From Ramazzottius varieornatus (taxonomy: Eukaryota; Animalia; Tardigrada), in NCBI GenBank assembly GCA_001949185.1, contig BDGG01000001.1, positions 4,329,624 through 4,393,623 on the forward strand: a stretch of DNA of 64,000 nt. The letters run 5' to 3'. The notes beneath the pieces are model-generated. The model saw only the letters and a program-made list of their open reading frames with translations, ran no database searches and was not told the DNA's origin. The first letter of the stretch is position 1, and each line of letters opens with the position of its first letter. Both the position numbers and the translations under genes were made by a program. Shown here one piece after another: positions 3,656-54,418 of this stretch.

Positions 3656-4389
3656 ATGACACGAAATACACCAACGGAATTTTTGCGATATCTTCGATTC
3701 TGGGCCGTCCTCTGTTTGTTGCTTATTCCAAACATATGTAAGTTGCCCGCTGTTCTTTGCTTGTCCGAGTCTTCCCCGGTTTGATCACTTATTTTGTAGC
3801 CGGGCAGCTACAGTGCTACGTTTGCGACGACATCGTCAGTAAAGACTGCCTCCTAAACAGCACGTCCCCGTCACTGGCCCCGTTCCTCAAGCCATGCGAT
3901 GCAGGATATGGCCGGTGTGTAACAGAAGATATCGCAAATGTGTGGGAATTGAACCTTGCAGGTACTTCTTCGTTTCTGTCACACTAGGAACACATGAATA
4001 TACAACCGAATAATCTCTTACTGTGGCTGACAGTTTGGCTCGAAATGTAACCTTATTCGTGTTTTTTTCCAGCCACGGAGCCTGCCGTTCTGAGGCGTTG
4101 TGACCAAGGTCCCGCTGTCGACTCGTATATCTGCACGATGGGTCCCAATGCTGCCGGAAAAACTTCTAACGTTTGCGCCTGCAGCAGCGATTCGTGTAAC
4201 GGGATAGTTGAATTCAAGGCTCGCCGCGCCTGGGAATGGAAATTCATCGAGTTCGACAGAGTGAACAAGGCAAAGCTAGCCAAGCTTCTGGCAGAGCTGA
4301 ATTCGTCCAGCAAGTTAACCTTTGCAGTGCCTCCCTCATTTCACCTTTTATCCTACGCAGTTTTGCGCATTTTCAGTGTTCGGGCATGA
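3656..4389 (+). CDS. Ly6/uPAR three-finger protein (quiver/sleepless-like), probably GPI-anchored; 3 exons
   Basis: Exons 3656-3737, 3800-3961, 4073-4389 with GT-AG junctions. Signal peptide FWAVLCLLLIPNI; LQCYVC...RRC...CACSSDSCN with 10 Cys; hydrophobic C-terminus. Confidence 0.82.
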
Positions 4390-4626
4390 ATGTCAAATTA
4401 TTGAAGTAGTGCATGTTGTTTTATGACTTTTATCCGCTTAGCAACTTCTTTCCTTGAGGTCAAACTTCAAATTGGCACTTCATTAGAAAACTTGAGGTTT
4501 CGATCAACAGAATAACGAAGCAAGCTTTTTGTTTCTGGATTGCTGGCATACTGGTGTTACTACCAACTTTGATTTCACATACTCTCACAAGTTTTCCGGT
4601 GACATTTCGGCGTGATTCTCAAGAAA

Positions 4627-5052
4627 ATGATTTCGGTATCTTCGTCCAAAGTGTTTGCCAGTCTCGCTCTCATCATCGCAGCCAGCGCCGTCACGTCCAG
4701 TTGGGCGCGACCTTCGGCCTTCGGAGTTATGCCCATCCACGACATGCATCCGGAACCGAATGGCCAACACGACAACCACATTCCTCCACACCACCCGGAG
4801 CACCACGACAGACAGGTACGAAGCCCGCAGTTCAAGCCCAAGTACGAAGCGAATAGGCACGGGGAATCTCGCTTCAACAAGCGGGGTGCTCCAGCAGCTG
4901 GTCAGGAGCCTGAGGTAGCACGGTCCATGGGAGAATCATCACACGCTGAAGTACCTCTCGCGCAACGACAGACTGCCGACAAGATGTCTATGCAAGACTT
5001 TGTGTTTGGCCTGATGCCTTTCATCAAGACCCCCGCGCCCCCAACAGTATAG
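4627..5052 (+). CDS. Secreted His-rich peptide precursor-like protein (single exon)
   Basis: Signal peptide MISVSSSKVFASLALIIAASAVTSSWA, His-rich tract, RQVR and KR candidate convertase sites. Confidence 0.65.
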   Translation: MISVSSSKVFASLALIIAASAVTSSWARPSAFGVMPIHDMHPEPNGQHDNHIPPHHPEHHDRQVRSPQFKPKYEANRHGESRFNKRGAPAAGQEPEVARSMGESSHAEVPLAQRQTADKMSMQDFVFGLMPFIKTPAPPTV

Positions 5053-5446
5053 AAGCTGTCTGCAGTTCGTTTCAATAGACGCTGTTTTTCGGGTTCGCCC
5101 GGAATACGGCCGCTTTGTTACGGTTATAGTAAAGGAGGAGTTATGGGGGACGTGGGCAGATAAACTGAACCAGATTATTTTTCCAAGTGGCGCAAACTTC
5201 AGTCTACCACAAATATCTATCACAGTGGAGACGTGCGCCACGTGGGTAACGATCTTTTTCAGTTCATTTGCCCAGGTTCCAATTTTGTTCAACTGAAAGT
5301 TATGTACACTAAATGTGGAAGTTACGTACGGAAGTTAACTCTCACAGCACACTCAACTCAAAACTAAGCGTTGCTGCGTAAAGCAATCAACATAATACTA
5401 AATTACTACTGGCAAACTTTCCTGTCAGAATCGGGTTTCCGGAACT

Positions 5447-8400: not shown

Positions 8401-10064
8401 TAGTTTGTCGTACCCGATTTCTTTGCAGTACTCGTAAAACATTCCGCCGAACAACTCCAGGATCAGAGTAGCGGGAACGCCTATAGAAGTTTTGATTCCT
8501 TGATCAGCTGTGTGAGTTTTCTTGACCCTGTTAAACTGAAACGGGACGTCGGCCAATGGATTGTTATCTCAAGTGGCGCATGTTCTGATTGTCATCAGCC
8601 AAAAGTGTGCGCCACTGGAGAAATCGATTCCGTTCAAGTTACTTTAGGTGTATTGCTGGACTTCAATGGGTCCCACCTAGGATTTTCTCCCCCGCCGCGA
8701 CCAGATCGAACGTCACAGAATCCTCGTACCGTTCGTACATGGAAAACGGTCCGACAATATTCGCTTGTTTCCTAAGAAAGAACACAATAGGTCAGCCGGT
8801 GCACAGGGCGCGAATGCAATAACGAACGGTTCAAGAAAACTTTTGGTTCCTTACTTTATGAGTTCCCATGTTTCGAGACCGAACTTCCGGGTTACAAGTT
8901 GTTCCACAATAATGTTGATCAGTCCATACTGAAACACAAACGAAAGCAAATGTCACGTGCATAAATACGGCGTACCACTGGGACAAAAGGGTATTTTGGG
9001 AGGCTCGTGCTGAGGTTGAACGGATTTTGATGAGGTCCATAGGCTTTACATAGGTCATCGTCACACACACACACACACCTTTCATTTATTTCACAATATC
9101 TCCTGGTCCCGTTGTCCATTTTCCAAAATTTAAATTCCACCGCGTAGATAATACTTCAGACTTTTAGATCACGTGACAGACCAGTCATCTTTTCAATCAA
9201 TCAGCCGGGAACCGTCTGCAGAGCGAACAAGGAAATACGGGTCGTTTTTAACTACTGGTCACCCGCCACATGACAGGTTCATGAGAGCGTCTAAATGGCC
9301 AGAAAAAACACTAAACGGCCAGGGAGAAAACGGGTTTAATTTGCGCGAAAAAGCGCGATGTAGAGCCCATGCGAATAAATTTGTGAAAAATTTACTGAAA
9401 ATCTTTTATCATGGAGTCGCTAGACCGATGTTCGAGCTGCGTTCTGGCCGTTTAGACGCTCTCATGAACCTGTCACGTGAAGGGTGACCAGCAGTAAAAA
9501 AGGAACCATATTTCCTTGTCCTCTCTGCAGACGGTTCCCGGCTGATCGATTGAAAAGATGACTGGTCTGTCACGTGATCTAAAAGTCTGAAGTATTATCT
9601 ACGCGGTGGAATTTAAATTTTGGAAAACGGACAACGGGACCAGGAGATATGATGAAACTAACGAAAGGTGTGGATGAGGATAACTTACGACAGTGACTGT
9701 AGTTTTACGAAAATAGTTACGTTCCAAAAGATTAATTTGGCTGAAAGTGAGGCGACACTGACAAAGGCCATCACCCAGCTATTCATATCATATTATCTAT
9801 GGAAATGAACTTCACCCTTCTCAATCGGAGGTTCCGAAAACGGAACGTATAATTAAAAACTCCACGCCAGTAGAAGCTACCAATAAATGACGAAGATTGG
9901 GAACTGGGCGAACGAAACGCGCAAGATCGTTTCCCAACAAGCGCACCCTTCTCGCCAGTAGAAATGGCCAGTAGAAATGGAAATGTGCGCCACGTGAGAT
10001 GGCGATCTTGAACGTACAGTATTATCCACTCAGCTCAAAATTACTAAAATAAATTGCTTACCAT
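5447..10064 (-). CDS. Soluble guanylyl cyclase, beta-type, paralogue 1 (H-NOX, PAS, coiled coil, cyclase, CaaX)
   Basis: ATG|gtaag at 10064; exon 2 from 8928 reads [25 protein letters not shown]. Haem His in [13 protein letters not shown] (YxSxR), KVETIAD, RYCLFGDTIN; ends CCIL. The N gap falls in an intron. Confidence 0.9.
6447..7081. other. Assembly gap (635 N) inside an sGC-1 intron
   Basis: Run of N; the flanking exons join in frame (VVE G|gtaaaa ... ctag|AT CCG). Confidence 0.95.
9074..9672. mobile_element. Foldback/MITE-like element with ~230-bp inverted arms, in sGC-1 intron 1
   Basis: ~9074-9304 is a highly similar reverse complement of ~9442-9672 (e.g. atatctcctggtcccgttgtcc...cgcgtagataatacttcagacttttagatcacgtgacagacc); no coding capacity evident. 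Confidence 0.88.
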
Positions 10065-11408: not shown

Positions 11409-14400
11409 CTACAAAATAGTGCAGAATTTTGTACGAGTCTTTTGAAATGCTTTCAGGCTCTTATGGCGATACAAAGCATCTGGTTGTTCGTAATTCAAGC
11501 TTTGATGGAGGTCCGTAGCCGACTTCGACCTTCGCTTCTGCAGGGAATAGTTGATACTGACGGGGCTCTCATTTTGGTCCTCGATTCTTGTACTCAGTGG
11601 CTCCATCTCTATAAGGCTCCCGTTTAACTGGATGCCGGGAACAGGGACTACCTCGCTCGCCACCTTGTTTGAGGTTCCCCGAGTCACAAGCCAAACAGCA
11701 ACCGGTTCCGGCTTGCCTTTCATGACCACTTGGTCGTGGAACTTGAAGTCGAGCTCGGTGAGCGTTTGATTACTTTCGTGGACCCGACTGGAAAGACAAA
11801 CCAATGAACAACGTTACAGTAAAGGTCGGAAAATTCATTGAACTGGCCAGAGGCCCAGAGCTGGTCTTACGTGTAGGTCTCTTCTGTGACATTGATAAAT
11901 CCCCTCTTGCCGTACGCCGCTGTTCGGCTGGTCAGGTTGATCGTGTCGCCAAACCTGCAAGTTTGATGGACAGAGCATAAGCAAGTCCAGCCGCTGGTGA
12001 GCCCCGACGGCGTCACGGAGGTATTCCTAGCCGCCGGCGAGAAAGGGTCCAACAATTTTGAGTAGGGTCGACTCAAGACCCTGAGCGTTGTTAGGGGTCA
12101 CGAGGTCAGCCACCTCCAAAGTTAAGAACAAATGAGGGCGAAAGATAACAGATTTCCCAGCTGGGAAGACATTCTCAGATTTAACCACCAACTGACGACA
12201 AACAACGAAATTCTATTGGCGATAAATACAATATTTCATCAACTATCAAGATAGAACTTGGGCCAGTTGTTGAAAAGACAGCTGCTGAGCTGTCTAGTTT
12301 CATCTTTAGTGCGGAAGTAGTTTCACGAGACCAGTTTCATCAGTAGCTGCTGATTCCTGATTCGCTGTGCTTTCAGTTTCATCTCGCGTGAACGGTAACA
12401 TTTGTTTGCGACCATTTTTCAGAAGCGGTTTAGGAGGACGATGTGCTTAGGTGGATTCTCTGTTCTTGGTAACGGTTGTAATTGGGGTTTTCTTTGTTTT
12501 GGTGAGTTGTGCCAACGGTCCGTTAATTGGTGTCCCCAGCTCTTTTTAGTCAAACTGTCTAAAAGTCCTTCTACTTACTAGTGCTAAATGTTCGTCCTCC
12601 AACGAAGTTTTGATATAATATCACTAAATATAGTAGATGCAAAAAGGCATCTACTGTGTCCTACTCTTAGTATAAAATATAGTATTGCGATAAATATGAT
12701 GCAATGTTTTGTGATAAATATCTCTGAATATTGATGTTTCGTTTTCGATATACAGTACATATCAATAGTTCGGGGTGATTAAGATTCTGACATTCAATTT
12801 TCGATGTATCAGATTTTATTGCAGTAATATGTCGATATATCAAGCTAGTACCAGTTAGTAAGAATTATCGAAATCAAGAAAGAGCCGAAGAGATAAAAGG
12901 TTGACTGAGGCGAGTAAGCACGTTGCTTGATCAATCAACGTCTGCCGTCATGCTGTCTAGTTCGCCGACGTGTAGATGGAGGCATGTGCATGATGACCCC
13001 GACCCGGAGCATCTATTCCCGATTCTCGGTACAGGTTTGCGGTTTATCGATATATCAGTAATATATCGATATATCAGTAATATATCGATGTAGAGCGATA
13101 TGGTACAATTTATTTTTAGTTATCATATTCCCCTCGGTGATATCCTGTCCATACGAGTATCGGCGGCCCAATTTGGCGACAAACTCTTCTCACACTGACT
13201 TAGCCTTTTCTGACATTGAATTCTTAGGAATATTTAGGGGCATCGATATCGCCGCACCGGATGATAAGCTCGCCCTGCTTCGCCACAGCTTATCCTGGTT
13301 CCACAAGGAATATCTTAAGTTAGTAATATACCCAGATATCATAAGTTCAAATACGAGGTAAACGACATAATTCTAGCATACCGATTTTCGCACCATAATT
13401 CGGGCAACGCGAAAAGTTTGAAGATCATCGTCAACGCTTGATTCATCTCTCATCGTACGCATGTTGATACAACATTAGGCTTTTTGACGTTGGACAGACC
13501 CATCTCTCTCCCAGGCCAAATTCCCGTGCTCCACAACGCTTTGTCGTTCTCAAACCTGTTGAAACCTCGAGGAGGGGGACCGGTCTACCTCAGGAAACAA
13601 GAACCAGTTCATTACGTGCAGCAAGAGCTGAGAAAAAATATGCCCGAATTACGAGTGAAAACTACTATGCCGAATTATGGCGTTTACCTCGTATCCGGAA
13701 ACCACTCTTTTTGACAAATATTGAAATCTAGATCTGGAGGCCAGTCTTCGGCTTTACGGGGTATGCTATGTTGTGCTGCATAGATTTTGCTGTCTTGTGC
13801 GCAGCGCATGCGGCCAGATTCCGTGCGCTAGTTAGGAATACCCCTGAGCTTCGAAGTATCGAAAGCGGACACTTACAGGCAGTACCGAGGCATACGACTC
13901 CCAATGATTCCTGGAATCAATACGCTCGGGTTAATCAGAGAATTTAGTAGTACCAGTAACTCAGTAATTCAGCAGAATGTGTTTCTTGGCCAATCCACCT
14001 CACGGAGACACGGACCTGCCACAATTTCTCCAGAATGGATGCCGATCGTTGTCTGTAAAGAAGAAAGCGATACGGCAAAAAACCTACTCAACCCAGCGTA
14101 TACAAGTGGATTTTTTACAGGTTAAATTCTAAAGGATTCCGATAATGTTTAGTCGAATGACATGAAATTGTTACCTTGAGAGCACGAGTTGCGTCAGTGA
14201 CATCATCGATCCGCTCGCATCTATCGACTAGATCGAGTGCCAGATTCGCTATGGCTAAGGCGTGGTCCTCCACTATGACCGGACATCCACTGACCACGAT
14301 GTAGTTGTCCGCAATGGTTTCGACCTATAACACAAAAACATCTTTGAGGAAGAATCCACCTGTGGGATGTCTCGGGGGAGGTTGGACCGTTCACGCAGCC

Positions 14401-17226
14401 TACCTTGTAAACTTTGGAGTGGACACGAGGATCCAAAATGGCATCAAACATCGTATACAGTCGATTGAGGAACCTGACTATCTCAATAGGATGATGGGTC
14501 GAAGAGAAGGCAGCAAACCCATCGACGCTACTGAACATAAGCGTAACGTCATCGTAGCGAAGACTGGGAATGGTCCGTTTGCACCGTAGATCGTCAGCAA
14601 TGGCGGGTGGCACCACCGAGTAGATCAACCTGGAATAATCAAAAATTAGAAGGAGGAAAATTAATACCATTGTTCATCATGTCTGACAAAAAATTGAAAA
14701 TCCGATAATATGTCAAATGAGAAACCGGCAAATGAAACATGCAAAACTTCTATCCCGAGTGGCGCTGATTCTGGCCAATAACAAGTGTAAAATGCGCTAC
14801 TTGAAATGATGTTTTTAGGGTACAGTTTTCGTTTGCCGACTTCCAAGATAAATATGCGACTATGGACTCTTATGAAACTGACCGGTCGGTTTTCTTCTTT
14901 TCCGTTTCAAGTTCTTCCAGCCGAGACTGCATGACTTGCGTCATGGCTTCCATCTGCTTCGCCGCTTCCTGCTCTTTGGCGAAGACTTCCGACATGAGGA
15001 TCAAATCCTTCACGGCATCGTGAACCGGGATATCGGTCAGGTACACGCCTTGTTCGAACAGATCCTGTAAATCGGTGGCTGACGGCGAACAAAGGAATAT
15101 TACGGTATTAGATTGCCATTGATATGTCATTCGTCCCCTGAGTTTCAACGGCTTTGTCGTCGTCGCCACTCTCTGTCTCAGGACATACGTCGTATTGATC
15201 AGGGCCAGGATATTCATGAATGAAAAGCCCGTCAGGCGAGGTCTGACTATCTCAAACATGGAGTCAATCGTCAAGCCTTGTTTCAAAAGGCCGTCACTGG
15301 ACTGGAAGAGTCGCCGCACCACGTTCCCACATGACGTGATCTCTAGGTCGCGGTTGAACGTAATGTGAAACGGGAACAAGTGCGAGAAACTCTGCGGGCT
15401 GATCAAGCTTTTAGTGGAGTTCACTGGACGAGGAACGTTCGATTCTTGTCTATCGATTTCTTTCTGCTTCGAACTCATGGTTATAAAGAAGCAAATTTCA
15501 CCCGGGTCTTGCTCTTCCTCCTGGTCTGTCGAGACTTCGACTTGGCAATCGACATTGAACAACTGTTTCAGAGAAGCTTTCAAGACACCTACGACTACGG
15601 GACCTAGGCCTGGACGAGTGGAGTAGTAGTGAAGGTAGAACTCTGTGCCGTCACCCCATTCGTCTCGCGTGACGCGGAAGGAAGGTGCGTGGTACCCGAC
15701 GAACGTGGTGGATAAGTGATCGTGGAGGCCATCGAGTTGTTCGAGAAAGTCCATGGGAGTCCCGCCGAGAGCATAAAGTAGCTTGTCGTAGCCAATCTCC
15801 ACGCAGAACTCAAAGAAGAACCCACCAAAAAGCTCTAGAATGGCCGCAGCAGGAACTCCTGCAACAATAGTCACAAAGTGTCAGGTCATCATCGAATACA
15901 AAGAAACTACGTATATGTAATCGCATAAATTAGTTTCGACCGTTTTTCTACAGGTTGCATAATCTGTTCTTTCTTCCGGAGAACTGTTTCTTACCGAGAA
16001 CTTTCTCTGCTGAAGCCACCAGATGGTAAGTGACCTCATCTGCATAACGCTCGTGCATGGCGAAGGTATTCGGAACATGATTTCCGGCTTCGCTCCTGTA
16101 ACACAAAATTCTAGACGAAATTCAATGTTAACAACGCAAGCCTAGCTTCCTAGCCATGGCACATTTTGCAACGGTGGAAAAATCTTTGGATTCTATTTGA
16201 CTCTTCAGTCGGAACTATGCTGTCCGAGCATCTGCTGGGTTTCGTCAAGCGGCGCAATGTTTTTGGCGGAAAACCCTCGTTAGGCTTACATCTTAGCGGC
16301 ACGAGCATGAAAACCATTTCTTCTACTCAATACTAACTCAGATGCGGATTTTGGAGAGAGTCATCGCGTACATTTCAGTCTCTCGAAAATGCGCCGGAGC
16401 CAGCTGGTCCATCGCGCGGGTTTCTCGATTCAGTCGAAATGGGTGATTATGCAGCGATTCCACTTCTCGTAACTGGCGCGTTTTTGCTCTTTACGAAAAT
16501 TTTCCATCTCGTTCGAGTATATATACTTAATTATCATAAATTCACAACGAATACAATAATGAAGAGGTAGCTACAATAATGGAGATGCTAGAACGGATGC
16601 GGACGCGATGGTCATTAGTACGTCCTCTATAACCATGAGCGTTATCGCTCATGTCGGACGCGGTGCATTTCGCACTTTTCGTATATAAAAGTCATTACGA
16701 GAAGCTATCACGGACTTCCGTCAAGAGCTCCGAAATGAGTGATTCCACTTCTCCTGTCATAACCGACTCGAAATGATCGAAAGTAGAACCACTCATTACG
16801 GAGCTCCTGACGGAGGTCCGTACTGGTTCTCCGTGATGAAGTGGAATCGCTGCATACACTGCAATCCTGGTGAGCGGAACTCTATGAAAATCAATCTCTC
16901 GAGCCGTACCTGACGGACTCCCAGGTCGCTGCTCCAAATTTTCTTGTTATGAGTTGTTCGATGGCGCAATTGATAAGTCCGTACTACAGAAGCAGAAAAT
17001 TGTGTTAACGTAACTGAATTCGACAAAGAAATTTGAATCAAGACTAAATTGGATGGCAGAAAACAATTTCGGGAGGACTGCTGTCCGAAGTGCCGCAGTC
17101 TCTAGTAACTGGCTCGAAACGCGCGCGACGTGAAATGGCAACCATCCCAAGATCGTTTGCCGGCCCCCGAAACCCCCTTTTTTGAAACTGAAACACGGAG
17201 AACGGATAGAGTCAAACACTTGCCAT
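11409..17226 (-). CDS. Soluble guanylyl cyclase, beta-type, paralogue 2
   Basis: Probable ATG|gcaagt at 17226 (GC donor). Exon 16983-16910 reads [51 protein letters not shown]|FGDTINLTSRT; ends CTIL. Confidence 0.9.
13045..13089. repeat. 19-bp tandem repeat (tatcgatatatcagtaata, ~2.3 copies) in an AT-rich intronic tract
   Basis: Read directly from the sequence. Confidence 0.7.
13354..13691. mobile_element. Mariner/Tc1-type MITE (~340 bp) with TA target duplication, in the long sGC-2 intron
   Basis: TA|cgaggtaaacgacataattc ... gaattatggcgtttacctcg|TA; imperfect TIRs of about 55 bp. Confidence 0.75.
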
Positions 17227-25133: not shown

Positions 25134-25328
25134 TTACGCCAGACGAAAATCAGGACCTCTAAGTAAAAATTACGGCACGATACTAAAGACTTTGGATTTT
25201 ATTAAGTTTCCTTCACGACAGGCCCTGTTCCTGGAGCACTGACACAGTGCCACGGCACGAACACAGTTTTTGGGATGAAATACAATTCTGCCTAAAGAAC
25301 AAATTCGACGAATATGCAACTGCATAAA

Positions 25329-28300
25329 TCAAAGCAGCGTGCAGACACTAGATCTGCTTCTCGGGCAGCCAAAGGTGCTAAGAGAAGTAGATTTTCCGAC
25401 TATGGCCTCGTAGGTTTTGGGCATCTCTAAAAATGCTGTTGCGGAAGACACTGCAAGGTGCCCCGACTTTATCGCTCCGATCTTCCTCCAACGATTCGTT
25501 ACGTTTGATAAAGATTTTGTTCGTCTTCGGCTCAAGAGCCAAACCGGCATCGGCTTCGGCTTCCCTTTCATTCGAACGTCTTTGTGGAACTGGAGACACA
25601 GATTCCCGGAGATATCCGGGAATGCTTGAAGGCGGCTAGAAAGACAGCGAAGTGTAAAATCTAGGTTTTGATAACTATGAAAAAGGATTTGTGCTGGTAG
25701 TACTACGTACTTGTAAGTTTCGGCGGTCACATTAATTCGCTCTTTTCTGCCGTTCGATGCGGTGCGACTCGTAATATTTATCGTGTCACCAAACAGGCAA
25801 AACCGAGGCATGCGCTGTCCAATTATACCTATTGCATTACAAGCCTGATTAATCGGTCTGATGGAGTTCCTGAACGGAAATCCTGTACTTACCGGCAACG
25901 ATTTCGCCGGAATGGATCCCAAGCGTAATCTGCAAGAGCCAGAACACCGCACATTAATTCCCTTCAGTCTGCGTACCGACCTTTCCCTAAGTTTCGGCTC
26001 CCTGAAGTGCCAAACTCTCGAGCACACCGGTGCAACCATCGATTACTGTACCTTCAAAGCAGTGCCACAAGCATCAAATAAATCCAACGCCAGGTTACAT
26101 ATGGCGATCGCGTGATCAGGAACAATCTAAAGAATAGTCGAAAGCTTTCATTAGATAGTGACGGATGCTGATAGCATTACGTCGGCCATGGATGCCTTCA
26201 ATTCAAAATGCAGGAATAAAGGAACTCCACTCTACTTTGAGTGGTACCTGGGGACATCCGCTGACGACGACATAATGGTCCGCAACGGTCTCTACCTGTG
26301 CCAAAGAACGATCAGCCACATTAACGTCAGAATAACTTTCTGGGGCCGCAAAATTTGAAATAGTGGGACATGTACCTTGTAAACTTTCGGGTGGTTTTGG
26401 GGATTCAAAATTGTGTCGAAGACGCTGTGGCATACGTTGAGCAACTGGACGACCTCGATAGGGCGGTGCGTGGCGCAAAATTCGGTGAAACCTTCGATGG
26501 CGCTGAACATTAGTGTCACGTCCTCATATCGAAGACTGGGAACATTCCGCTTGTGCCGGAGGTCGTCGGCGATAGATACAGGAACGACGGAGTACACTAA
26601 CCTAGAACAAGAACCATCCATTAGTATGCGAAGCAGCGGTGCCCCATCTGATTCTGATTCTTTTCAGCAGTCGAATTTTAAATATGTGGCCTCGGCTCGG
26701 ACAGCCGAACCGAACCGTTTCAGCATTTTCTAGTCCAACACAGCCCGACTGGACAATCCAGAACTGCCAGATATTCGAATTTTTAGCTGCCAAAACGAAT
26801 TAAACTCGTATGGGCACCACTGATGCGAACCGTGTCACTCATCGAATGAACACCGCCCAAATTACCTACCGATCGGTTTTCTGCTTTTCGCCATCCAGTT
26901 CAACGTACCGCACTTGCAACAAGTTTGTCATGTTCTCAAGCTGGCGAGCATACTCGTAATCCGTAGCGAACTGTTCGGAAAGCAAGAGCAGGTCTTTCGT
27001 CGCGTCGTGTATAGGTACGTCAGCCAAATGCACTCTCTGGTCCAGCAGGTCCTGCAGGTCGATCGCGGAAGGTGAGCAGAAGAACAGCATAACGTTGAAC
27101 TGCCACTGGAATGTCATCTTCCCTTTCAATTTCAAGGGCTTGACGGTCGCTGCATTCTTCTCAATCAAGACGTAAACCGTATTGTTATGCGAGAGAATAC
27201 TGTTGAAATCAAAGTTCAACCTCGGTCGGACAATATCGAACACTGTGTTGATACTCCTTCCGACTAGACCGTCAAGTATGAAATGCCGAGTCACCGCGTT
27301 CCCACAGGATGTCACCACCATGTCCTGGTTGAACGCAATGTGGAAAGGGAAGAGACTGTCGAACGTCTGCTGAGTCATAAGGTCTTCGGTGGTAGTGGCT
27401 TGCCGAGGAAGGCTGATACTGGACCCTAGACGATGTGGGCCCTTACCGTCCCGATCAGATAACTTGATCAGAAAGCAAGTTTCCCCTTCTCGAGTTTCCT
27501 GCTCCGACACCTTAATGTCTACGACTACGTCAAAGAGAGTCTTGAAAGCCGCGCGGATGATACCGACTACGACGGGACCCAGTGCGGGTCTTTGGGAATA
27601 GTAGTACAGGTAGAATTCGGTTCCGTCACCGCCTTCTTCCTGAGTGCAGCGGAAGGAAGGGGCGTTGAAGCCAATGTAGGTTGTGGACAGATGGTCGTGC
27701 AGGGCGTCCAACTGTTCCAGAAAATCCACGGGGGTTCCACCCAAGGCTCGCATGATGCTGGCGTAGCCGATTTCTGTACAGTACTCAAAAAAGAACTCGC
27801 CGAATATTTCCAAGATTATTGCGGCAGGAACACCTGCAAAACAATACTATACGGTCGACTGACCACAGTTATCATTCTTTTGGACGAGGATTTCGTTATC
27901 CGCACTCTAACCCAAATTTTCTTGGTTTGAATGACTAACAAACGCTGCAGTTTCAGAGCATTTATCTACAGTACGAAATTTGTATACCGAGTAATTTTTC
28001 AGCTGCGAAGACCAAATCGTAGCTTAAGGCATCCTCATATCTTTCGAATATTGAAAAGGTTTCCGGGGTGTGAATTCCCACTTCCTTCCTGAAAGAAGAT
28101 AAATGTAGAACAGAAGCAACCCTTGAGCGAAACTTGTTTATCATAATCACCTGATAGCTTCCCAGGTTTCCGGGCCAAACTTCCGCAGCACCAGCTGTTC
28201 GATGGTGTGGTTAATGAGGCCGTACTATGAAAAAAGCATGAATAAAGCCATCGATAAGTAGGTGAAGTTCTCGAGAAACGCCAGGTCTGAAACCGAACCA

Positions 28301-29628: not shown

Positions 29629-32600
29629 ATGGATGGCGAGCCGCCGCGAGAGCGGAAGGACAGTCGGCAAGTCAACAACAACGCCTCCTCAGGCATTCGA
29701 CGTTCTTCACGCCTCGGCCATCAAAACGCTAATCTATCGGGACCATTTCGTGGTGGATTCTTCGAAACCGTCGATGAGCTGGCTAACCTAGACGCGCCAC
29801 AAACCGCCAAGAAAACCTCGGACCGACGAGTCTCACAGGTGTCCGTCGCTCATGGCGCACAAGACAGTGGGGTACGAGGAAGGCGAACCTCTCGAACCAG
29901 GTCGCCCTCGATCGTGGCTTCCCCGTCCGCAGGCATCATCAATCCAACGTTCGAGACGAAAGATGCCCTCGACGACCTCGATCCAAGCTTCAGGAAGCTG
30001 TCTGTCGTCGCCGCTCGGAGGATGTCCGTACGATCCCCAGTTGGAATACTGGATGAACCCAAAGCCGACGATCCAGACGAGTAAGCATGACGCCTTCATC
30101 AATCTTCAGCGAGTGAAATGTTTTATGTTGTCATATACATCCTGATGATGCCTTTCAGACATTTCTTCTTCAAAGGACCTCTCAGCAGATCAACCAAGGT
30201 CCTTATCTCCACAAGTATTATCTTTTTCATGATTGCCGAAATCATGACGTCCATCTATCTTCTTGAAATATATAAAGGTGTGTCCAAATAATGGCGACCG
30301 GAAGCAAAAGTCCGCGGTCAGGTTAATGTTGAAGTGACGACTGTGAAACCTCATCATCTGGTGACTGATCATTTCTATGCATTCAGAGCCCCCTCCCAAA
30401 TCATGCGACAGTGAGTCCTGCCTGATCTTCGGTGAGTACTGCGCGCGTATTAATCATTAGCGCGAAGGTTTGAACGGTTTGAATGTCATCTGCAGGTCAA
30501 CTGATGAGAGGGTCTCTCAATCTATCAGCAAACCCCTGCACAGATTTTTATTCTTATGCATGCGGGAATTTTCAAAGGCGAACGCCCTACGGCGATCAGT
30601 ACCGGGACCTGGACGGACTTGTGAATGATGAGCTTGTTGCCCGAATGCACGGTAAGACAACGGTCTCTTATTGCGCCCTAAAAGCAGATAACTTCCAAGT
30701 TCGTATTTGCAGAGGCCCTGGAAAACCTGAGACATACAGTGAAGACCCACGAGGACTACGAAAAAAAAGCTTGGCAGTTCTATCGGGAATGTCTGGAAAT
30801 CGGTACGACAGATTAAAGGTTTCCAAAGTGTAAGATATATACAGTAACATCTAGCTGTTGTACAGACTCAACGAACGTGAGAGAATCTCTTGTGAAAGTC
30901 CTGCAGAATCTCAGCTGGCCCCTAATCACACCACCCCATCACACTACCACTGCCTTACTAGAACTGTTCAAAGAAGCTCATATACATGGCGCCGACCCGT
31001 TTTTCCACGTTTCCCGTTTGCCCAACCACGACAATACCCATCAGCCTTACTGGACGGTCCAAGAAGGAAGACTATCGCTACCACTACCCGTCTACGATTC
31101 CCCACTCTATCGGACTCAATACGCCCTTTTCATCCAGAATCTCGTTGCGGAGGTTCGAGAAACTGTCCAGGGTAATTTAGTTACCGACCTAGGTCCAGCC
31201 ACTCTTGACGTCTTCGAGCGGATAGTCGATCTGGAAGCTGAGCTAGCCGACGTCCGACACGAACCACAGTTCTTCAAGCTAACCATCCGAGAGTTCTCCG
31301 ATGCTTATCCCTCCATTGTCAGAAATTACAATCTTGTGGAATACTTCATTGCACTGACAAAAGCCGAGGAACATCTCGACCTTGTCCCAGCACGAAACCA
31401 GACAGTCGCCATCACGGAGGACACTGTGATCATTATGAAGAACCGCGACTATTTCTATATCCTGAACCAGATGCTGGGTCGCACCTCCGAAAGAGACCAG
31501 TCTATCTACCTGGGATGGCGTGTACTCTTTCACTACATCGATCTGATCGATGAAGACCCGGTGGTTCGGGGAATTGTCCAAAGGTTTTGGATGTCCATCG
31601 GGAACTGGCCACGGCAATACCACTCGCATGGGAAGAACTGTGCCCAAACGGCGATCGACGCACTACCTGATGGCGGACTGGCGCTTTATCGCAAGGAACA
31701 CTTCACTACAGATCAGGCAGACCAGATCAACGACATCCTGGACAGACTCACGAAAATCGCTACGGAAGTAGTGAAGGTAAGTGGACACCACCAGCCAGCC
31801 TTTCGACCGATAATACCTTCTCAGTAACGATTTTTAGGCTCAGGAATGGATGAGCGATCAAGACAAAAATACCGCTATTTCAAAATTCCATAGCCTCAAG
31901 CGGCAACTCCCATACTCCGACGAACTATATTCGAAAAACCTCACGAACCAGCTCTATTCAAAGGTTCGGACATTCTTACAAGCTCTTTCTTCCAAACAGA
32001 ATAGGTAACTGTCTTTTCCGACTGGGTTGCAGAGTGTGGTGGAGTACGACTCATTTTTCCTCACGATCAGAAATTTCCAACGAGTCCGGCAACATTTTGT
32101 CCTATCTGGAGTTTATGATACCCCAATTGAGTTTCCCGATCTGCTCAGTTTTGCCTTTGGAGCTGACTACCGTCTTGACAATCCCAGCCAAGGACTTGTG
32201 GTAGTTCTGCCCCGAACGTTTGTGGCTCCCTTTTACGACTCATCGTACCCAAGTTTCGCCAATTACGCCATGCTTGGCTTCCTGTACGCTCGCGAACTGG
32301 CCCATGTCGTTGACTATGACTGTAAATCTGAAGAATCAAGCGTAACTTCTTACCTACAGTACTTCCTGAGTTGCGAAGACCCACGTCCATGTTTCCGGTA
32401 GGGTTCATGTTGAACAAGACTGCGGGAGAGAACGGCGGACCATCCAACAGCACCCTGCAGCAGTACCATTCCGGTCTTGGCTACATCTTGGAGCTATACC
32501 GAAATACTTCCATCCTCCTCGGACTGCCTGTGAATTATGAAACTCTGTATGCGGACATTGCAGATCAAGCGGCGCTACGCATATCATACCGGGTAAAATA

Positions 32601-47217: not shown

Positions 47218-47267
47218 NNNNNNNNNNNNNNNNNNNNNNNNNNNNNNNNNNNNNNNNNNNNNNNNNN
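47218..47267. other. Assembly gap (50 N)
   Basis: Run of N. Confidence 0.95.
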
Positions 47268-47512: not shown

Positions 47513-50500
47513 ATGTGCAAAATTACACCCAAAAATAAGCTTATCCAGACTACCAGCTTATCCCCATTGAGTCGGCCATTAATTCCGCTCTTCCTTTTCT
47601 GTGTAGTTTTTTCGAATGCACGTTCCATCGATGGAAAACAGAAAACATATCGTTTCGGCGTCCTGTCTAGTCGGACTCTGCTGGCCATATGCAACGACAC
47701 CGCGTCTAGCTACATGGCGGAGCAAGAAGCGCTGGGACACAACGTGATCATCACCTGTTATAGCACGGAACTTGCGACTCAGTTGGGCGTCATCCGAGCA
47801 CGAGATATCCCCACCGTGGTTAATACTCCGGTGGCCACTGCCAATGGCAAGAACGCTACTGCAGCCGACATCGATTTCATGACTATATTCTTTCTTCGAA
47901 CCATCTTCACCAATGCCGAACTAAACGATAATTCAGACAGGTTCATAGCGTACCCTGTGCTAGTTAATGGCGCTGTCGTCGGCTACAATCTACCGGATCT
48001 GGAACCAGGAAACATCGGAGGACTGGACGCCAAAGCGGACCCGGTTGTTCTACGGTTGAGTCAAGCCGTTATTACTGGTACTGTAATTATGGTCCAGAAC
48101 GCTCTTGAGATGGTTAATCAATCTGGTCAGATTTGTATGTAGCCAGTTTACTTTATAAATGATTTTATTGCACTTGGCCTTTTGGTCCACCGTGAAACGA
48201 ATGCGAGCTTTTGGACGTCAACCGATGGGAACTTGACTTGCACAGACAGTTTGCAACGGAAGGACCAAAACTACGTGGTTTTCCAGACTGGTTAATAAAC
48301 GCTTGATTACAGGGATATTCTCTGGAAAGATCAAGACGTGGGACGATCCGGCTATAACGAGCTCGAACCCTGATTTCTCACGGCTGACGAATAAGAAGTT
48401 GCCCAACAAGGCGATACAATTTGGGTTCCGGAGCGATCGCTTTACGACTTCGATGATCATGAGTCGCGCCCTGTACTCGATGGATAACGTCACCTTTAAG
48501 AAGGCATTCACTCCGGAAGGACTGCAAGCTGGTACGGATTTGAGGAAGAATCTGACTAGCGGAATCGCTGCCAGCTTGAACTCGACGATCTTCACCAGCG
48601 TGGCGCCGTCTTCCTTCAGTCTATTTGGTGGCTTGCAAGCAACTCCGTACTCGATGATTATCACCATGCAAGAAGACCTAGAGAACTATGGCTTCCGCGT
48701 TGCGGCAATTCAGAACAAAGCTGGGCAATATATCAATTCCAATCGAGATTCTGTAAGAGTCCAGTATTTAAAAAAGTCAACAAGAAAAGTTCAGAAATAC
48801 AGAACTAGTAAAGCTAATGGGATGCTGGCAGATGAATAATTGAACATGATCGTGTGTCACGCGGCGCACGCTCTCGTGTTTTCGGTTAGACCTGAGTAAG
48901 GGGCAAAAACAATCATGTTCAGGTTATATGCCAATCAGAAATAATTATGTAAATATCCGAGTGAAACAGAACAAATCGCCAAAGAAACAACTGAATGTTT
49001 TTGTTTTGTCAGTAGATTCAAGCAGCAATTGCCAATGCCAGCCAAGATCCCAACTCGGCCAACTGCACCTTTAGCATGTCAAACTTGGACGGAAATGGCA
49101 GCTACCCATATCTTGAACGGGTCTACCTGGGGGTGATGAAGTACAGAGTCGGTCAGGCGACCCAAGTCCTGCCCGACTGCGACACAATGGCTGCCACCTT
49201 TCGTTTCATCAACTGGGTGCTGGACTCCGCTAGCTTATTAGCCCAGTCCTCGTTCTCCCGAAACTACTACGTGAAATCTGCGCAGAGCTGGTACGCGGGG
49301 TTGGAGGATCTGGAGAGCAGTATGCGGTGCGGTGATCACCGGCAGAAGGTCTCGACCTTCATGGATGAGATAAAGACTAGCGTAGCGCTGATCGCTGCGA
49401 TGAATAACCCGGCGACGTGGGGTGAGGTGGCGGCTGGAATGATCTTCGGTGGCGCTGCGGCCTGGTACTTCGGGCGGAAAATCTTTGTTTTCCTGAACCG
49501 GCTGAGGAAGGAAAGTATGGAACAGTACGCCATCAGCAGCAAGAATATTCGGCTCACTCCTACGCTGTACTCGCCGGTGGACAGGTAAAAACTTTATCGG
49601 AAAAATCGCAACAGCCAATGGTCGAGAATGCTGTGTGGGAAATATCGTAGTAAAAAGCTTAAAGGACAGCAGCTACAATAGACCTGTTTCGTAAGTCACG
49701 TTTCGGCTCTGAATAGAATAAAATCTCATGATTTTATACTGTGTCGGTTTCTGTGCAGAAACTGTTTCGCGGTTTGCTCGCTTCCGGCACAGAATATTAG
49801 CATAAAGGGATATTAGGCCACGCAAGTTCAGCAGGCCATCGGAATTCGCGGGGCCTGTCATTCAGCCCTCTACTGGATAAAGCCTGGACTTCTTTCGCTT
49901 TTTCTGCCGATAGTTTCGGGAAGACAAATATCTCTCCCTAACTTCAATGCTAGTTTCGGTCGAAAACATGATGGATTTCGAGAAGGAACGAGAGCGGAAG
50001 TCAAGTGCGCAATGTGGGAGAGGCGTGTAGCTCGGATCACTTGACGCGCCAAGTCCAATTCGCTGATTGGTCTGATCACGCTCCACTCCACCAAGATTTC
50101 AAATTTCGACCAAAGTGGTCAATAGTACAATCAACTCAGCTTGCAAATAATTTCAAATTCTGTGCAGCGATATTAGGCAAAACATAAGCCGTGGATAACT
50201 GCACAGCATAAAACCTGTACATATGCTGTGCAAGCCGAAAACATGACTTGCGAAACAGGTCCAATCACTCACGGTAGAATAAGCGCACAAATCGAAAAGG
50301 TCGAGAACTGATCGAACGCTGTAAGAAAGAAAAAGCTGGCTGTGGTAAATATGTTTTCTGGTTTCCCTTGATAGGTACAAAGGCGTGGTAGCGTCGAGAA
50401 GGGTGGTGGACCGCTACATCCCTTTAGCCTCCTTACAGTGCATCACGACCGGCACCTGGGGAGAGCACGAGGTCTTCCTGCGGCCGTGCAGTCTGGTCAT

Positions 50501-53500
50501 TCATCGGCTGAATCACAGAGCCAGGATGAAGGTCCTCGAGCTCGTGGAGATTTCACAGCACAAAAACGTTGTGATGTTCTATGGACTTACAGAGCTTCCG
50601 GCTGGGCGCTGCTTGGTCTGCAACTTTTGTAAGTCCAGTTTCCTCGTTGCAATTTTTTTTTCGCCGCCGTACATTTCGGTATTATTGAACTTGTGCTCAC
50701 TTTTGTCCTGTCTCTTATAGGTCCGTTTGGGGACCTGCGTACTTTGATCATCTCCAAAAAGCACGTCTTTAGTATGAATACAAAGTTTTCGCTGACTGGC
50801 GACATCTGCGAAGGGATGGAGTATCTGCACGACTGTGATATCGTTCACGGTAACCTTCGAAGTTGCGCAGTGTACATTGAAGCAAACTGGACCGCCAAAA
50901 TTTCCGACTAGTACGTTCGATTCGAAGACATTAGTTCTGTCTTTTCTCGGTGGATTTACCCACGCAAAACTTTGCTGTTTCTTTCAGCGAGTACGATGCG
51001 GTCCACCAGGTTCAAGGATCTTTTCACCCAACAGTGGCGCAACTGAAGCAGAAGCTCTCTTTGTACCAGCAAACCTCTTTGTACCCCTGGTTATACTGGA
51101 CAGCTCCGGAAATCCTGCGCCAAGGCATAACCGGTCGAGAGATTCCACCAGAAAAATCAGCCGATACATACAGGTAGAAATTATCTACGTTTGTCGTCTC
51201 ATCTCGACTACGTTGTATAATCGAGGTTCAGTTTTGGCATAGTGTGTTCGGAAGTCTTCGCTATGGAGCCAGCCTACCAAAAGTACCAAGAACTACCTTA
51301 CAAGCTGAACCCTGCTCAGATCCTCAACGGTATTCTGTCGGCGGATATGCGACCGCGCGAAGACTGGAAGAACACATCCACACCGCGATGCGTTCTGAGA
51401 GTAATGGAGCACTGCTGGCAGGAACACGCGTCGCATCGGCCTTCGTTTCATAGGCTGAAGAGGCTTTTCAGAGCGGTTCAGTCCATGCGAAGACATGTGG
51501 CTGATAAGGTAAACTGACCGACAAACATCTAAACCGGGACGTGGTCAAATGATTCGAACCCGATTGTTCTCCTCAAGTGATGCACACTCCCAGCTTTGAA
51601 GATGTGCGTACTTGATATAACGATCTGCCTCCATCCATTCGCTCACGTCCCAAATGCAGTAGCGGAAATTTATTGTCAGTGTTCAGTCATCTTTCCATTC
51701 AGATTATGATTGCCGCCGAGAAGACGTCCGAAACGGTGAAGAATCGCTGTGAGGCCGCGACACAGCGACTGAACCGCTTCGACAACGAGTTTCACAAGTA
51801 CTCCAAAATTCTCGTTCCACCGGCTTACTGGCGTTCCATCTACAAACAAAAGCTGTACATGTCCATCACAAGGCACAAATTAGGGATAGTCTTCATCTGT
51901 AACCTGGTGGATTACAGCAGTTTAATCAACGCGGACCGGACGGCAAAGGCCATCGAAAGCGTGAACTTGCTCCATCGGGGTTTCCAAAACCTGATCGAGA
52001 AGGGTGGAAGGGTCTACAGGGTCTACCGGAACGGCACTTGTTTTGTGGCGCTGGGAAATGTTCCGTATGGAATCAAGGAAGATCCGATTGACTCCATCGC
52101 ACAGCTGGCGTTTGACTTCATGACCTGGGCGTGGAAGGTGAAGGTCCCGGCAAATATTATGGACGGTTTTCACTTACAGATTGGAATCCATAGTGGACCG
52201 GTAAGTGCCAACGGTACTTGCTGTGAACAATCTGTAGGAAACTTGTGCGCCTGCCTTCAGCAAGCGCTATTGTACGAATGTCGATCATGAAACGAGTTAA
52301 TAATCACGTCAGTTCAGGTCAGAAAATTAATGTTAATGTATTGGGAGATGCTGATTTTTCGGTTTGTTTTGATATTTTTTATGTACACGCATTACACATG
52401 GATGGTAATTTTTCTAAGCAGTACATCGTTATTTTTAGCCATAATTATTATTGCTTCGTTGTGCGAACTCTACCGGTACATGGTTCCATAGATGGCAGCA
52501 GGTACACTGAAGCACAGTACGAACCAGTTCATCGCACTGGGCATGGTGCAAAAAGAAGCCTGGAACATCGCTCGGTCCTCCGCGCCCTGTCGCATCCTGA
52601 TCAGCGAAGAATTTCACCAAAACCTCCGACAGCTGGCCCAGATCTTCATTAAGTACCGCATCGTACCTAACACCGAACCCGTCTTTGGCTACACCGGCAA
52701 GACATATTGGCTGGTCGGTATGAACTACTACCGCGCACAAAGTCTCCTGGATGATATATTCGCACTGGACCCCGAGAACCTCGAAGCGCTGGCCAAATGG
52801 CATGAGAAGAAGCAATCAAGAAAGAAAGAGAAGAAGGGCATCTTGGCCAACGAACTGATCAAGACGGTGTCTGCTCTACCGTTCGACTACCAAGCCCTCA
52901 CAGCTGGTGGTAATACGCAGTACTTAGTGGACGTACCGGACGCTGGCGATGATGAGCAGGCTGGTGAGAAACAGAAGCCGGTGACGCAAAGAGGTGGACG
53001 GCGATCTGTTGTGGCGGGAAACCCTAGGTCGATCAGTTATCAAGCAGCGAAGGCGGGACTTGACCAGAACGAACCCGAAGAGGAAACGGTAATTTTACGA
53101 GCAGTCGAGACATTGTTTCGTTTTATGCTTTTGTGTATATAGGTGTTATTTGCTTCCGAATGGGACGTCTGCGCGTGGTTAGGGGTAACAATCAGATCGT
53201 TTTCCCAAGTAGCGAACCCGCTCAGTCAATAACGATGCGGACGTGCGCAACTTGAGATAAATATCTGAATGGAACCATTCGCCGGCATGCAAAATACGTG
53301 TGTACAGCTGAACATATTTGGCACAATAATGATATTATTTTTCATTCTTCGTAGGTGGTTGATACAAGAGAGCCGCCTTTTATGGAAGCCACAGTTCTAA
53401 TAACACGTGGAAGACAACAAGGTGTTAGAGCCAAAGTCAGCTTGAAAGAACTTCAGTCTGGCGACCTGATCGAAAACACCTCGGTGAAGTCGTTGCTGAG

Positions 53501-54418
53501 TACTCCGCAAGCTCAAGCGTCTTTGAAAAAGCTGAGAATGCAGAAACGGAAGGAACAACAAGAACTGGCTGATCGACAGGATGAACAACGCTCCAGGATG
53601 GAACTGGCAAAATCTGCGCGCTCAGATGTGGAAACGGAAAATACGCTGAAGTCGCTGACGAACGAGGAAATTGAGCGGGATAGCCTACCTGCCATTCCAG
53701 TACGACGTATCCCATCAGCCAAAGCTAGTCGCTCTGAAGCAACGTTGGGAGCCAACCAGGATGGACTGTCGCGAAATCAAGCTTCAGACGTTTCTGGTAT
53801 GTCATAATTGGTCCACTTCTACCCGCCAACTCATCTTGTTGTCAAATCTAGAGTCCGTGTGGCTAAACAATTATCCAAAGCCATTCTGGCAGGAGGCTCG
53901 CCTGCTAAAATGGCTTTGGATTACCACTGCTGCTGCTTTCTGGAAACTCGTCGCCTCTTTAATTACTAGCTAATGTAATGGTTTGTAAGTTACAGTTCGC
54001 CGAAGAAGGACGTCTGATCTTCAACGAAGTCTGGCTGAACGAGCGTCGGCATCTTCGATAGAGCTTTCGAAGCCACTGGACGTAAAAAGATTGGACCGTA
54101 TTGCAAACGAAGAAAGACAGCCCTTGCAAGCGGTCAGCATTGCAAACAAACCTGGTGAGTTCAGAGCGATAAGACGATATGCGATATGACAAGAACATGG
54201 ACAACCAAGCAGTATTTGCACGTTTCTCTACAGGTTACTCTGTCATACAGTCACGAAATGCGGTGAACCAGAACAGGCAACAAACCGAAGATGATCTCGA
54301 TCAGGTCACCACGCCGTTGCTGGATACCGAGACGGAGGAGAACGGCACAGAGGAAGAAGACGACAGCTTGGTCAAGCTTAAAGGGAAAAGTAAATCAAGG
54401 AAGAAGAAAAAGAAGTGA
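47513..54418 (+). CDS. Receptor guanylyl cyclase-like protein with PstS-like ectodomain, TM, pseudokinase, degenerate cyclase and long charged tail
   Basis: Signal peptide; exons 47513-48077, 48313-48752, 49016-49584 carry PstS motifs. TM ~49420-49495. Kinase-homology EYLHDCDIVHGNLRS...AKISD...WTAPE. Cyclase-fold LQIGIHSGPV...ILISEE. Stop at 54418. Confidence 0.85.
49680..50262. mobile_element. MITE (~580 bp) with AAT target duplication, PIF/Harbinger-like, in intron 3 of the receptor gene
   Basis: aat|agacctgtttcgtaagtcacgtttcggct ... agccgaaaacatgacttgcgaaacaggtcc|aat. Confidence 0.7.

Follow-up and report, generated by a model that had tools for sequence, protein, structure and literature searches.

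The question raised by this locus is whether an animal receptor of the guanylate cyclase (GC) type can carry an extracellular domain related to PstS, the bacterial phosphate-binding protein, and what such a receptor might bind and signal. The window analysed here is a stretch of 64,000 nucleotides from the tardigrade Ramazzottius varieornatus (GenBank assembly GCA_001949185.1, contig BDGG01000001.1, positions 4,329,624 to 4,393,623), and the gene in question, hereafter the window gene, is predicted to occupy positions 47513-54418 of its forward strand. To our knowledge, little is understood of how animal cells sense extracellular phosphate and other small solutes, and none of the characterised animal receptors binds its ligand through a PstS-type domain. 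The analyses described below make it probable that the window gene encodes an intact type I receptor of the receptor guanylate cyclase (rGC) lineage, with a PstS-type ectodomain, a remodelled binding pocket and a dead cyclase, which belongs to a small family and whose output may be of the scaffold or silencing kind.

Gene model and domain architecture

The gene model was built by eye downstream of exon 3 and was then checked by script for splice sites, phases and stops. The predicted gene has 12 exons on the + strand, with 4362 nt encoding 1453 aa without an inner stop (Table 1), and its 11 introns, which measure 58-790 bases, all begin with GT, end with AG and have compatible phases. Inspection of the sequence indicated a type I topology, with a signal peptide and one transmembrane helix; eight N-x-S/T sequons were found in exons 1-3, all preceding the transmembrane helix, and the G+C content of the gene equals that of its flanks. 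The six peptide motifs that an earlier note, made from the letters alone, had quoted from the ectodomain were all located at their place in + strand frames, including IFSGKIKTWDDPAITSSNP and LPNKAIQFGFRSD in exon 2. The same note had described two phase-consistent GT-AG introns within the ectodomain and an in-frame run into a transmembrane helix and a kinase-homology domain (KHD) with the motif HGNL, and this description was borne out. The predicted gene is an intact, intron-bearing animal gene and not contamination.

Two of the exon joins were also represented in related sequences. The join between exons 1 and 2 (...LRLSQAVITG/IFSGKIK...) is contiguous in P0001, a 344-aa orthologue ORF (open reading frame) on an unlabelled public contig, whose identity to the window gene is 76% in exon 2 and 60% in exon 1. 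The join between exons 3 and 4 is mirrored in the paralogue L010, in which one uninterrupted ORF leads from the end of the ectodomain through the transmembrane helix into the KHD; the equivalent of the join reads PTDRFKGVIASRRVVD...MLRPCSLNIHRMN in this paralogue. Because L010 covers the same join in a single ORF, and because the same domain order recurs at five loci in the genome, the window gene is regarded as one gene across exons 3 and 4.

Homology of the ectodomain to PstS

The ectodomain of the window gene was searched exon by exon, and questions about the whole domain were put to database orthologues and to the ORFs of paralogues. Exon 2 matched the NCBIfam model TIGR00975 (PstS) with an E value of 1.6e-12 and 47.2 bits, a similarity far below the equivalog level of that model (cut-off 205 bits), and it also matched NF008171 (E 1.3e-4) and Pfam PBP_like_2 (PF12849; E 5.9e-4, 20.1 bits, the gathering cut-off being 27 bits). 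PBP_like_2 scored above its cut-off in the orthologues P0001 (30.2 bits, over a region spanning exons 1 and 2) and P0004 and in the paralogues L011, L012 and L013, with paralogue scores of 29-46 bits. The 12 best matches of exon 2 in the Protein Data Bank (PDB) were PstS without exception, each individually marginal. Chance can be excluded as the source of the similarity, because exon 2 by itself reaches this E value with TIGR00975 and all 12 best PDB matches are PstS.

A family profile (A3), composed of orthologues, paralogues and two environmental periplasmic-binding proteins (PBPs), covered exon 1 and matched PstS in the PDB at 3e-24, a score that is raised by the canonical rows in the profile; only PstS and DING-type entries were matched. 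Structural comparison, which was carried out on an AlphaFold2 (AF2) model of the orthologue fragment P0001 (pLDDT, predicted local distance difference test, 64; pTM, predicted template modelling score, 0.59), led in the same direction: the first ~40 Foldseek matches of this model were all PstS phosphate-binding proteins, with a best E value of 2.9e-11 and a TM (template modelling) score of about 0.4. Exon 3 matched the C-terminal end of a PBP_like_2 domain in P0012, a protein of Fabomonas tropica (residues 278-340; BLASTP E 1e-3). A profile of exon-3 equivalents (A5) matched the C-terminal ends of PstS structures weakly (E 0.02-0.07), alongside chance matches to Cas8, and the pattern YP...DC...RFxRW was conserved across the paralogues in this region. 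ANF_receptor, the ectodomain family of known animal receptor GCs, was searched for with Pfam and matched no exon of the window gene. The predicted ectodomain is homologous to PstS/PBP_like_2, a class II periplasmic-binding protein, and not to ANF_receptor, as the earlier note had proposed.

Loss of cyclase catalytic residues

The Pfam family PK_Tyr_Ser-Thr was matched by exon 5 (E 2.1e-10) and exon 7 (E 4.1e-4). The KHD, IVHGNLRSCAVYIEANWTAKISDY, has IVHGNLRS (HGNL) where HRD would be expected and ISDY where DFG would be expected, together with WTAPE and YSFGIV; an HGxL motif without the catalytic Asp is a characteristic of receptor GCs. The class III cyclase fold of the cyclase-homology domain (CHD) was recognised by Guanylate_cyc in exon 8 (E 4.9e-9, 36.5 bits, with a cut-off of 21.9 bits). 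A phmmer search of exon 8 against the PDB gave no match, and exon 9 alone matched nothing in Pfam or the PDB; exon 9 was aligned without gaps through the paralogue L010 (44% identity) to the canonical cyclase pieces L016, L022 and L031.

The CHD was compared with canonical cyclase pieces of the same genome (VTIYFSDIVGFT, YKVETIGDAYMV and PRFCIFGDTVNTASRMES, with YFSDIVGFT and KVETIGDAYMV) and with P0012 of Fabomonas. In exon 8, the canonical Asp of the first metal site is replaced by Asn (FICNLVDYS), the Asp of the second metal site by Thr, and the Glu of guanine specificity by Tyr (both in RVYRNGTCFV). Exon 9 reads TNQFIALGMVQKEAWNIARSS where the canonical sequence is PRFCIFGDTVNTASRMES, and here the Cys of guanine specificity is replaced by Ile, the phosphate-contacting Arg by Gln, and the transition-state Asn and Arg by Lys and Asn, respectively. 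Motifs of the fold were kept, namely IGIHSGP in exon 8 and RILISEEF and TYWLVG in exon 9. The four paralogues with a CHD also lack essential cyclase catalytic residues, L011 and L044 retaining only the second Asp.

In dimers of class III cyclases, each active site is composed of the metal half of one chain and the transition-state half of the other. Since both halves have been lost, the window chain would complete no active site even with an active partner, and rescue of catalysis in a heterodimer, which was considered, was ruled out on this ground. Production of cGMP by the window protein is therefore judged very unlikely from its predicted residues. The designation as a receptor GC, which had been given to the protein in the earlier note, stands as far as descent is concerned and fails with regard to catalysis, every class of cyclase catalytic residue having been replaced.

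The ligand pocket

The phosphate ligands of E. coli PstS, namely T10, F11, S38, D56, R135, S139, G140 and T141, were looked for in the window gene. The HMMER alignment places FRSDRFTTS of exon 2 without gaps on HRSDGSGTS of PstS, so that the equivalents of R135, D137 and T141 are kept, whereas Arg stands in the place of G138, Phe in that of S139 and Thr in that of G140 (E. coli PstS numbering). Conservation is lacking around S38 and D56, where the alignment is ambiguous; the canonical set of phosphate ligands is incomplete in the window gene. The altered loop, with the motif R-[SNK]-D-R-[FY]-x-[ST]-T, recurs in P0001-P0004, whose identity to exon 2 is 38-76%, and for this reason the site appears to be constrained rather than decayed. 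Most likely, the window ectodomain would bind a small ligand other than orthophosphate, or phosphate in a non-canonical manner. Of the role that had been suggested for this protein, a sensor for phosphate or another small solute, the phosphate part is weakened for the window copy, and the small-solute part is compatible with an altered small-ligand pocket.

The paralogue L012 has the same architecture as the window gene, but it reads GGGATIP, GVGSGTG, DFAGSD and RTDNSGTT in its ectodomain, and the equivalents of T10, S38, D56, R135, D137, S139, G140 and T141 are all kept. With this full canonical set, L012 is the best candidate in the genome for a true phosphate-binding receptor. It is conceivable, though we would hold it only tentatively, that L012 is a true extracellular orthophosphate receptor, that the window gene is a duplicate with a new small-ligand specificity, and that all members of the family signal without cGMP through a dimeric pseudokinase/pseudocyclase scaffold. 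If true, L012 would be the first phosphate sensor of an animal for which the binding domain is defined.

A family of PstS-type receptors in R. varieornatus

The earlier note had proposed that the receptor was made by domain capture. Genome searches showed that the window gene is no isolated case: five loci, the window gene among them, combine a PstS-like ectodomain, a transmembrane helix, an HGxL-type KHD and a CHD, and one further locus, L013, has the ectodomain only (Table 1). The PstS-like ectodomain paralogues are spread over four scaffolds. The ectodomain of L013 is nearest to that of L010 (36-40% identity), and no kinase or cyclase part was found within about 7 kb downstream of it; L013 could be a truncated copy, or it could encode a binding protein that is secreted or anchored. 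L044 was missed by the family profile search and was found through its KHD (51% identity to exon 5), its PstS-like signal being weak.

In the genome, no fewer than 158 exons matched Guanylate_cyc and no fewer than 72 matches to ANF_receptor were counted, and a large cyclase expansion is mentioned without detail in the genome paper (PMC5034306). When the KHD exon of the window gene was searched against the genome, only L010 (61%), L011 (53%) and L044 (51%) were found at E values below 1e-5, all with PstS-like ectodomains, and on this account the PstS-type receptors appear to form one diverged clade within the large cyclase expansion. A single fusion that was later duplicated is compatible with the data. 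Directly upstream of L010, a Med31 (SOH1) gene is located on the - strand (L010:8416-8931), which marks the 5' limit of the L010 receptor gene.

Table 1. Predicted features of the window gene (positions within the window) and related loci in the R. varieornatus genome
Feature	Position	Strand	Description
Exon 1	47513..48077	+	ATG, signal peptide and N-terminal part of PstS-like domain; YPVLVNGAVVGYNLP, LRLSQAVIT; donor g/gtactg, phase 1
Signal peptide	about 47513-47626	+	...FSNARS/IDG; hydrophobic N-terminus ...LIPLFLFCVVFSNARS; judged by eye, without dedicated predictor
Intron 1	48078-48312	+	GT..AG, phase 1, restores Gly codon of ...AVITG/IFSGK; acceptor ttacag
Exon 2	48313..48752	+	Central PstS-like domain; IFSGKIKTWDDPAI, GFRSDRFTTS pocket loop, AAIQNKAGQYI; phase 1 in, phase 0 out
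Intron 2	48753-49015	+	GT..AG (gtaaga...cagtag), phase 0, links ...NRDS/IQAAI
Exon 3	49016..49584	+	C-terminal PstS-like part (SNLDGNGSYP, FRFINWVL), Cys-containing stalk, transmembrane helix, juxtamembrane NRLRKE...YAISSKNI; donor ag/gtaaaa, phase 2
Transmembrane helix	about 49427-49495	+	Single hydrophobic stretch VAAGMIFGGAAAWYFGRKIFVFL in exon 3, then NRLRKE
Intron 3	49585-50374	+	790 bases, longest in model; join reads PVD-R-YKGVVASRRVVD
Exons 4-7	50375-50628, 50721-50910, 50988-51173, 51232-51508	+	rGC-type KHD; HGNL in exon 5
Exon 8	51703..52200	+	Linker helix and N-terminal half of CHD
Exon 9	52492..53088	+	C-terminal half of CHD, strongly diverged; start of tail
Exons 10-12	53355-53796, 53996-54154, 54234-54418	+	Long charged low-complexity tail, ends KSKSRKKKKK and stop
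L010	C2, 7.99 Mb		Full architecture; ectodomain-transmembrane-KHD ORF uninterrupted
L011	C2, 1.75 Mb		Full architecture
L012	G000:C3:4461578-4465562 (4.46 Mb)	-	PBP_like_2, transmembrane helix, pseudokinase, degenerate CHD
L012 ORFs	in G000:C3:4457001-4467000	-	PBP 8206-8619 and 7850-8236; kinase 5226-6212; cyclase-like 4416-5060
L013	G000:C2:3442001-3452000 (3.45 Mb)	-	ORFs 7424-8512 and 7033-7527; ectodomain only
L044	G000:C11:1541001-1551000 (1.545 Mb)	+	Ectodomain 4188-6389, KHD 6421-7200, CHD 8263-9272

Distribution and origin

An exhaustive HMMER search with exon 2 against 1.84 billion representative proteins gave 15 matches, of which about ten were considered genuine: five unlabelled eukaryote-like ORFs (P0001-P0004 and P0007), P0005, P0012, two environmental PBPs and one PBP from Acidimicrobiales. 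P0006, P0008, P0009, P0011 and P0013 were dismissed as chance low-complexity matches. No named animal protein was among the 15 matches, in a search that falls short of a full metazoan survey. A homologue search with P0001 added one fragment, P0035; a search with P0002 found no related loci in metagenomes, a search with a single piece of L012 found none in genomes, and a search of protein clusters returned generic PBP_like_2 clusters only (green algae, bacteria and viruses). In full-text searches of the literature, no article on an animal receptor cyclase with a PstS-type ectodomain came to light, in agreement with the suggestion of the earlier note that this architecture is not a described animal family.

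A quick maximum likelihood (ML) tree of the central PBP region was calculated from 49 rows and 171 columns; its bacterial rows had been selected with a single peptide pattern and are a biased sample. The sampled bacteria formed a cluster (SH-aLRT, the Shimodaira-Hasegawa-like approximate likelihood ratio test, 94), as did the protist domains (90), and the tardigrade-type rows were located outside both on long branches, the window gene falling in a 99% clade with P0001-P0004 and P0007. Two groupings were put to the approximately unbiased (AU) test, and neither was rejected: a single clade holding all tardigrade-type rows (p 0.57) and one holding all eukaryote rows (p 0.38). The best identity between bacterial PstS and the central piece of L012 was 33-46% over 70-95 residues. 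Recent horizontal transfer of the ectodomain, one form of the transfer that the earlier note had considered, finds no support in these comparisons, and an ancient transfer is possible.

Comparison with known receptors and binding proteins

The predicted protein resembles animal receptor GCs, such as NPR-A/GC-A, GC-C, the retinal GCs and the nematode GCYs, in having a signal peptide, an ectodomain, one transmembrane helix, a KHD with HGNL, a linker helix and a class III CHD. It differs from them in that its ectodomain is a class II PBP of the PstS/PBP_like_2 type whereas theirs is ANF_receptor, a class I PBP, in its replaced catalytic residues, and in its long charged C-terminal tail; moreover, its KHD and CHD are only distantly similar to those of canonical cyclases in the same genome. 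With bacterial PstS (E. coli 1IXH and Y. pestis 2Z22), the ectodomain shares a homologous fold and the motifs IFxGxIxxWxDPAI, RSD...T and YP...F..W. Unlike bacterial PstS, it is eukaryotic, intron-bearing and glycosylation-ready, is fused to a signalling receptor rather than serving a transporter, and has the loop RSDRFTTS instead of RSDGSGTS; nor is it, as a multi-exon gene fused to receptor domains, a partner of PstCAB permease genes, and it is surrounded by genes of animal type, for soluble GCs and an M13 peptidase.

The earlier note had mentioned receptors outside animals in which a PstS-like domain is joined to a kinase and a cyclase, and one protein of this architecture was found in a protist, Fabomonas tropica. 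P0012 (EukProt EP00163, 1664 aa) has PBP_like_2, then a kinase, then Guanylate_cyc in one chain, as in the window gene; in contrast to the window gene, P0012 carries the PBP domain in two copies, together with an EGF-like piece, its kinase keeps HGDLK and DFG, and its cyclase keeps FFDVVGFT, ETIGD and GDTVNTSARMES, so that both would appear to be active. No specific similarity was found between P0012 and the KHD or CHD of the window gene, and a global alignment of all exon pieces to P0012 gave scattered fragments. Because specific similarity to the tardigrade KHD and CHD is lacking, the architecture of P0012 probably arose independently, by convergence. With P0012 as the query, no second protein combining PBP, kinase and cyclase was found, the kinase matches being due to chance.

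PBP_like_2 has been reported on a chytrid class C GPCR-like (G protein-coupled receptor-like) protein, SPPG_06488 (PMC3251606), and is among the abbreviations listed in a survey of GPCRs in amoebae (PMC10445921). P0005 of Chromosphaera perkinsii combines four PBP_like_2 domains with Ephrin_rec_like repeats and a TRP-like channel. Like the window gene, SPPG_06488 and P0005 have PBP_like_2 as an extracellular sensor module in a eukaryote; their outputs are different, a seven-transmembrane domain in one and a TRP-like channel with Ephrin_rec_like in the other, and neither has the chassis of an animal rGC. DING proteins, including the 'human phosphate-binding protein', are PstS-superfamily proteins reported from eukaryotic tissues (PMC2817009, PMC7922408), and their eukaryotic genes have been reported to be missing from genome databases (PMC2817009, PMC2225411). 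The tardigrade family is related to them to the extent of weak A3 profile matches (E 1e-4 to 3e-4), but the window gene is genome-encoded with introns, forms part of a receptor and is closer to classical PstS. It thus provides a genome-encoded, intron-bearing counterpart to these long-disputed eukaryotic PstS-like proteins.

Alternative explanations and proposed mechanism

A working extracellular phosphate sensor that turns phosphate binding into cGMP synthesis would be a literal form of what the earlier note had inferred, and PstS homology, the retained equivalents of R135, D137 and T141, the recognition of the CHD by Pfam and the demonstration by L012 that the family can hold a full phosphate pocket are all consistent with it. 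It is nevertheless highly improbable, as the window gene has neither of the two metal-binding Asp residues, has lost Asn and Arg at the transition-state positions and lacks the Glu/Cys pair for guanine; the anion loop is altered at positions 138, 139 and 140 and the S38/D56 region is not conserved. The lost catalytic residues, together with a C-terminal half of the CHD too diverged to be recognised alone, would also be consistent with decay, in which a duplicated receptor cyclase, active in the past, is drifting towards a functionless pseudogene. This we consider unlikely: none of the twelve exons is interrupted by a stop, their splice sites follow the consensus, an orthologue shows 76% identity in the ectodomain, the pocket motif is common to relatives at 31-44% identity, and HGNLRS...KISD, IGIHSGP, RILISE[ED]F and TYWL[IV]G are conserved among paralogues without catalysis, which is the pattern of a maintained pseudoenzyme.

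The two remaining alternatives concern the integrity of the gene itself, and we give very little credence to either. Exons 1-3 (a PstS-like protein, secreted or anchored in the membrane) and exons 4-12 (an intracellular pseudokinase/cyclase-like protein) might be two genes falsely merged over the 790-base gap, given that intron 3 is the longest in the model and that an ectodomain-only paralogue, L013, exists; however, the single ORF of L010 matches the predicted join residue for residue, the same order is found on one strand at five loci, and exon 4 begins in the middle of a domain, has no initiation codon and is compatible with exon 3 in phase. A recent acquisition of the ectodomain from bacteria, or bacterial contamination of the assembly, might be suspected from the overwhelmingly bacterial occurrence of PstS (PBP_like_2 matches were found in 13 of 14 microbial genomes used as a control), but it is hardly compatible with two spliceosomal introns within the domain, a signal peptide, glycosylation sequons, a G+C content equal to that of the flanks, paralogues on four scaffolds, and a best bacterial identity as low as 33-46% even for the best-conserved paralogue. 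The family also lies outside the sampled bacterial cluster, and neither of the single clades put to the AU test was rejected.

The window gene is therefore best read, from its predicted features, as a pseudo-cyclase receptor that is restricted to its lineage and whose pocket for a small ligand has been altered. Several points weigh against this reading. The evidence for the ectodomain was obtained one exon at a time; exons 1 and 3 each gave no significant PstS match when searched alone, exon 1 matched nothing in Pfam or, by phmmer, in the PDB, and a phmmer search of exon 3 against the PDB returned no meaningful match. The sole structural model, that of the orthologue fragment, is mediocre by its pLDDT and TM score and does not fix the geometry of the pocket, and the N-lobe ligand positions T10, S38 and D56 are not confidently alignable in the window gene. 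Exons 10-12 were placed by splice logic alone, without homology support. A 50-N assembly gap (47218-47267) is located 246 bp upstream of the start codon, where the 5' end and promoter are incompletely represented and a further 5' exon is possible. Finally, the mechanism of signalling, by scaffolding or silencing, is one that we infer.

According to this mechanism, a ligand would close the ectodomain in the manner of a Venus flytrap, and closure would be relayed through the transmembrane helix and the linker helix to a dimeric pseudokinase/pseudocyclase module. Such a module might serve as a scaffold, or might pair with other chains of the cyclase family and silence them; the long charged tail possibly contributes. 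The pseudo-cyclase reading implies that the rGC chassis can carry a class II PBP ectodomain in an animal, and that the combination was kept, duplicated and has outlasted its cyclase chemistry, which makes the family a naturally occurring example of a receptor with both a pseudokinase and a pseudocyclase. The intact pocket of L012 and the remodelled pockets of the other copies provide a built-in comparison for ligand specificity and for non-catalytic signalling.

Other genes in the window

Three soluble GC genes, each with HNOB, HNOBA and Guanylate_cyc, are arranged in tandem on the - strand of the window, upstream of the receptor gene (~5400-8560, ~14150-15880 and ~25300-27820), and one of them is interrupted by an assembly gap, a run of N at 6447-7081. 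The three other cyclase matches in the window were considered as relatives of the window gene and rejected, as they are these soluble GCs. An ORF on the + strand (30877-31824) contains Peptidase_M13_N of the neprilysin type and is an ordinary animal neighbour gene.

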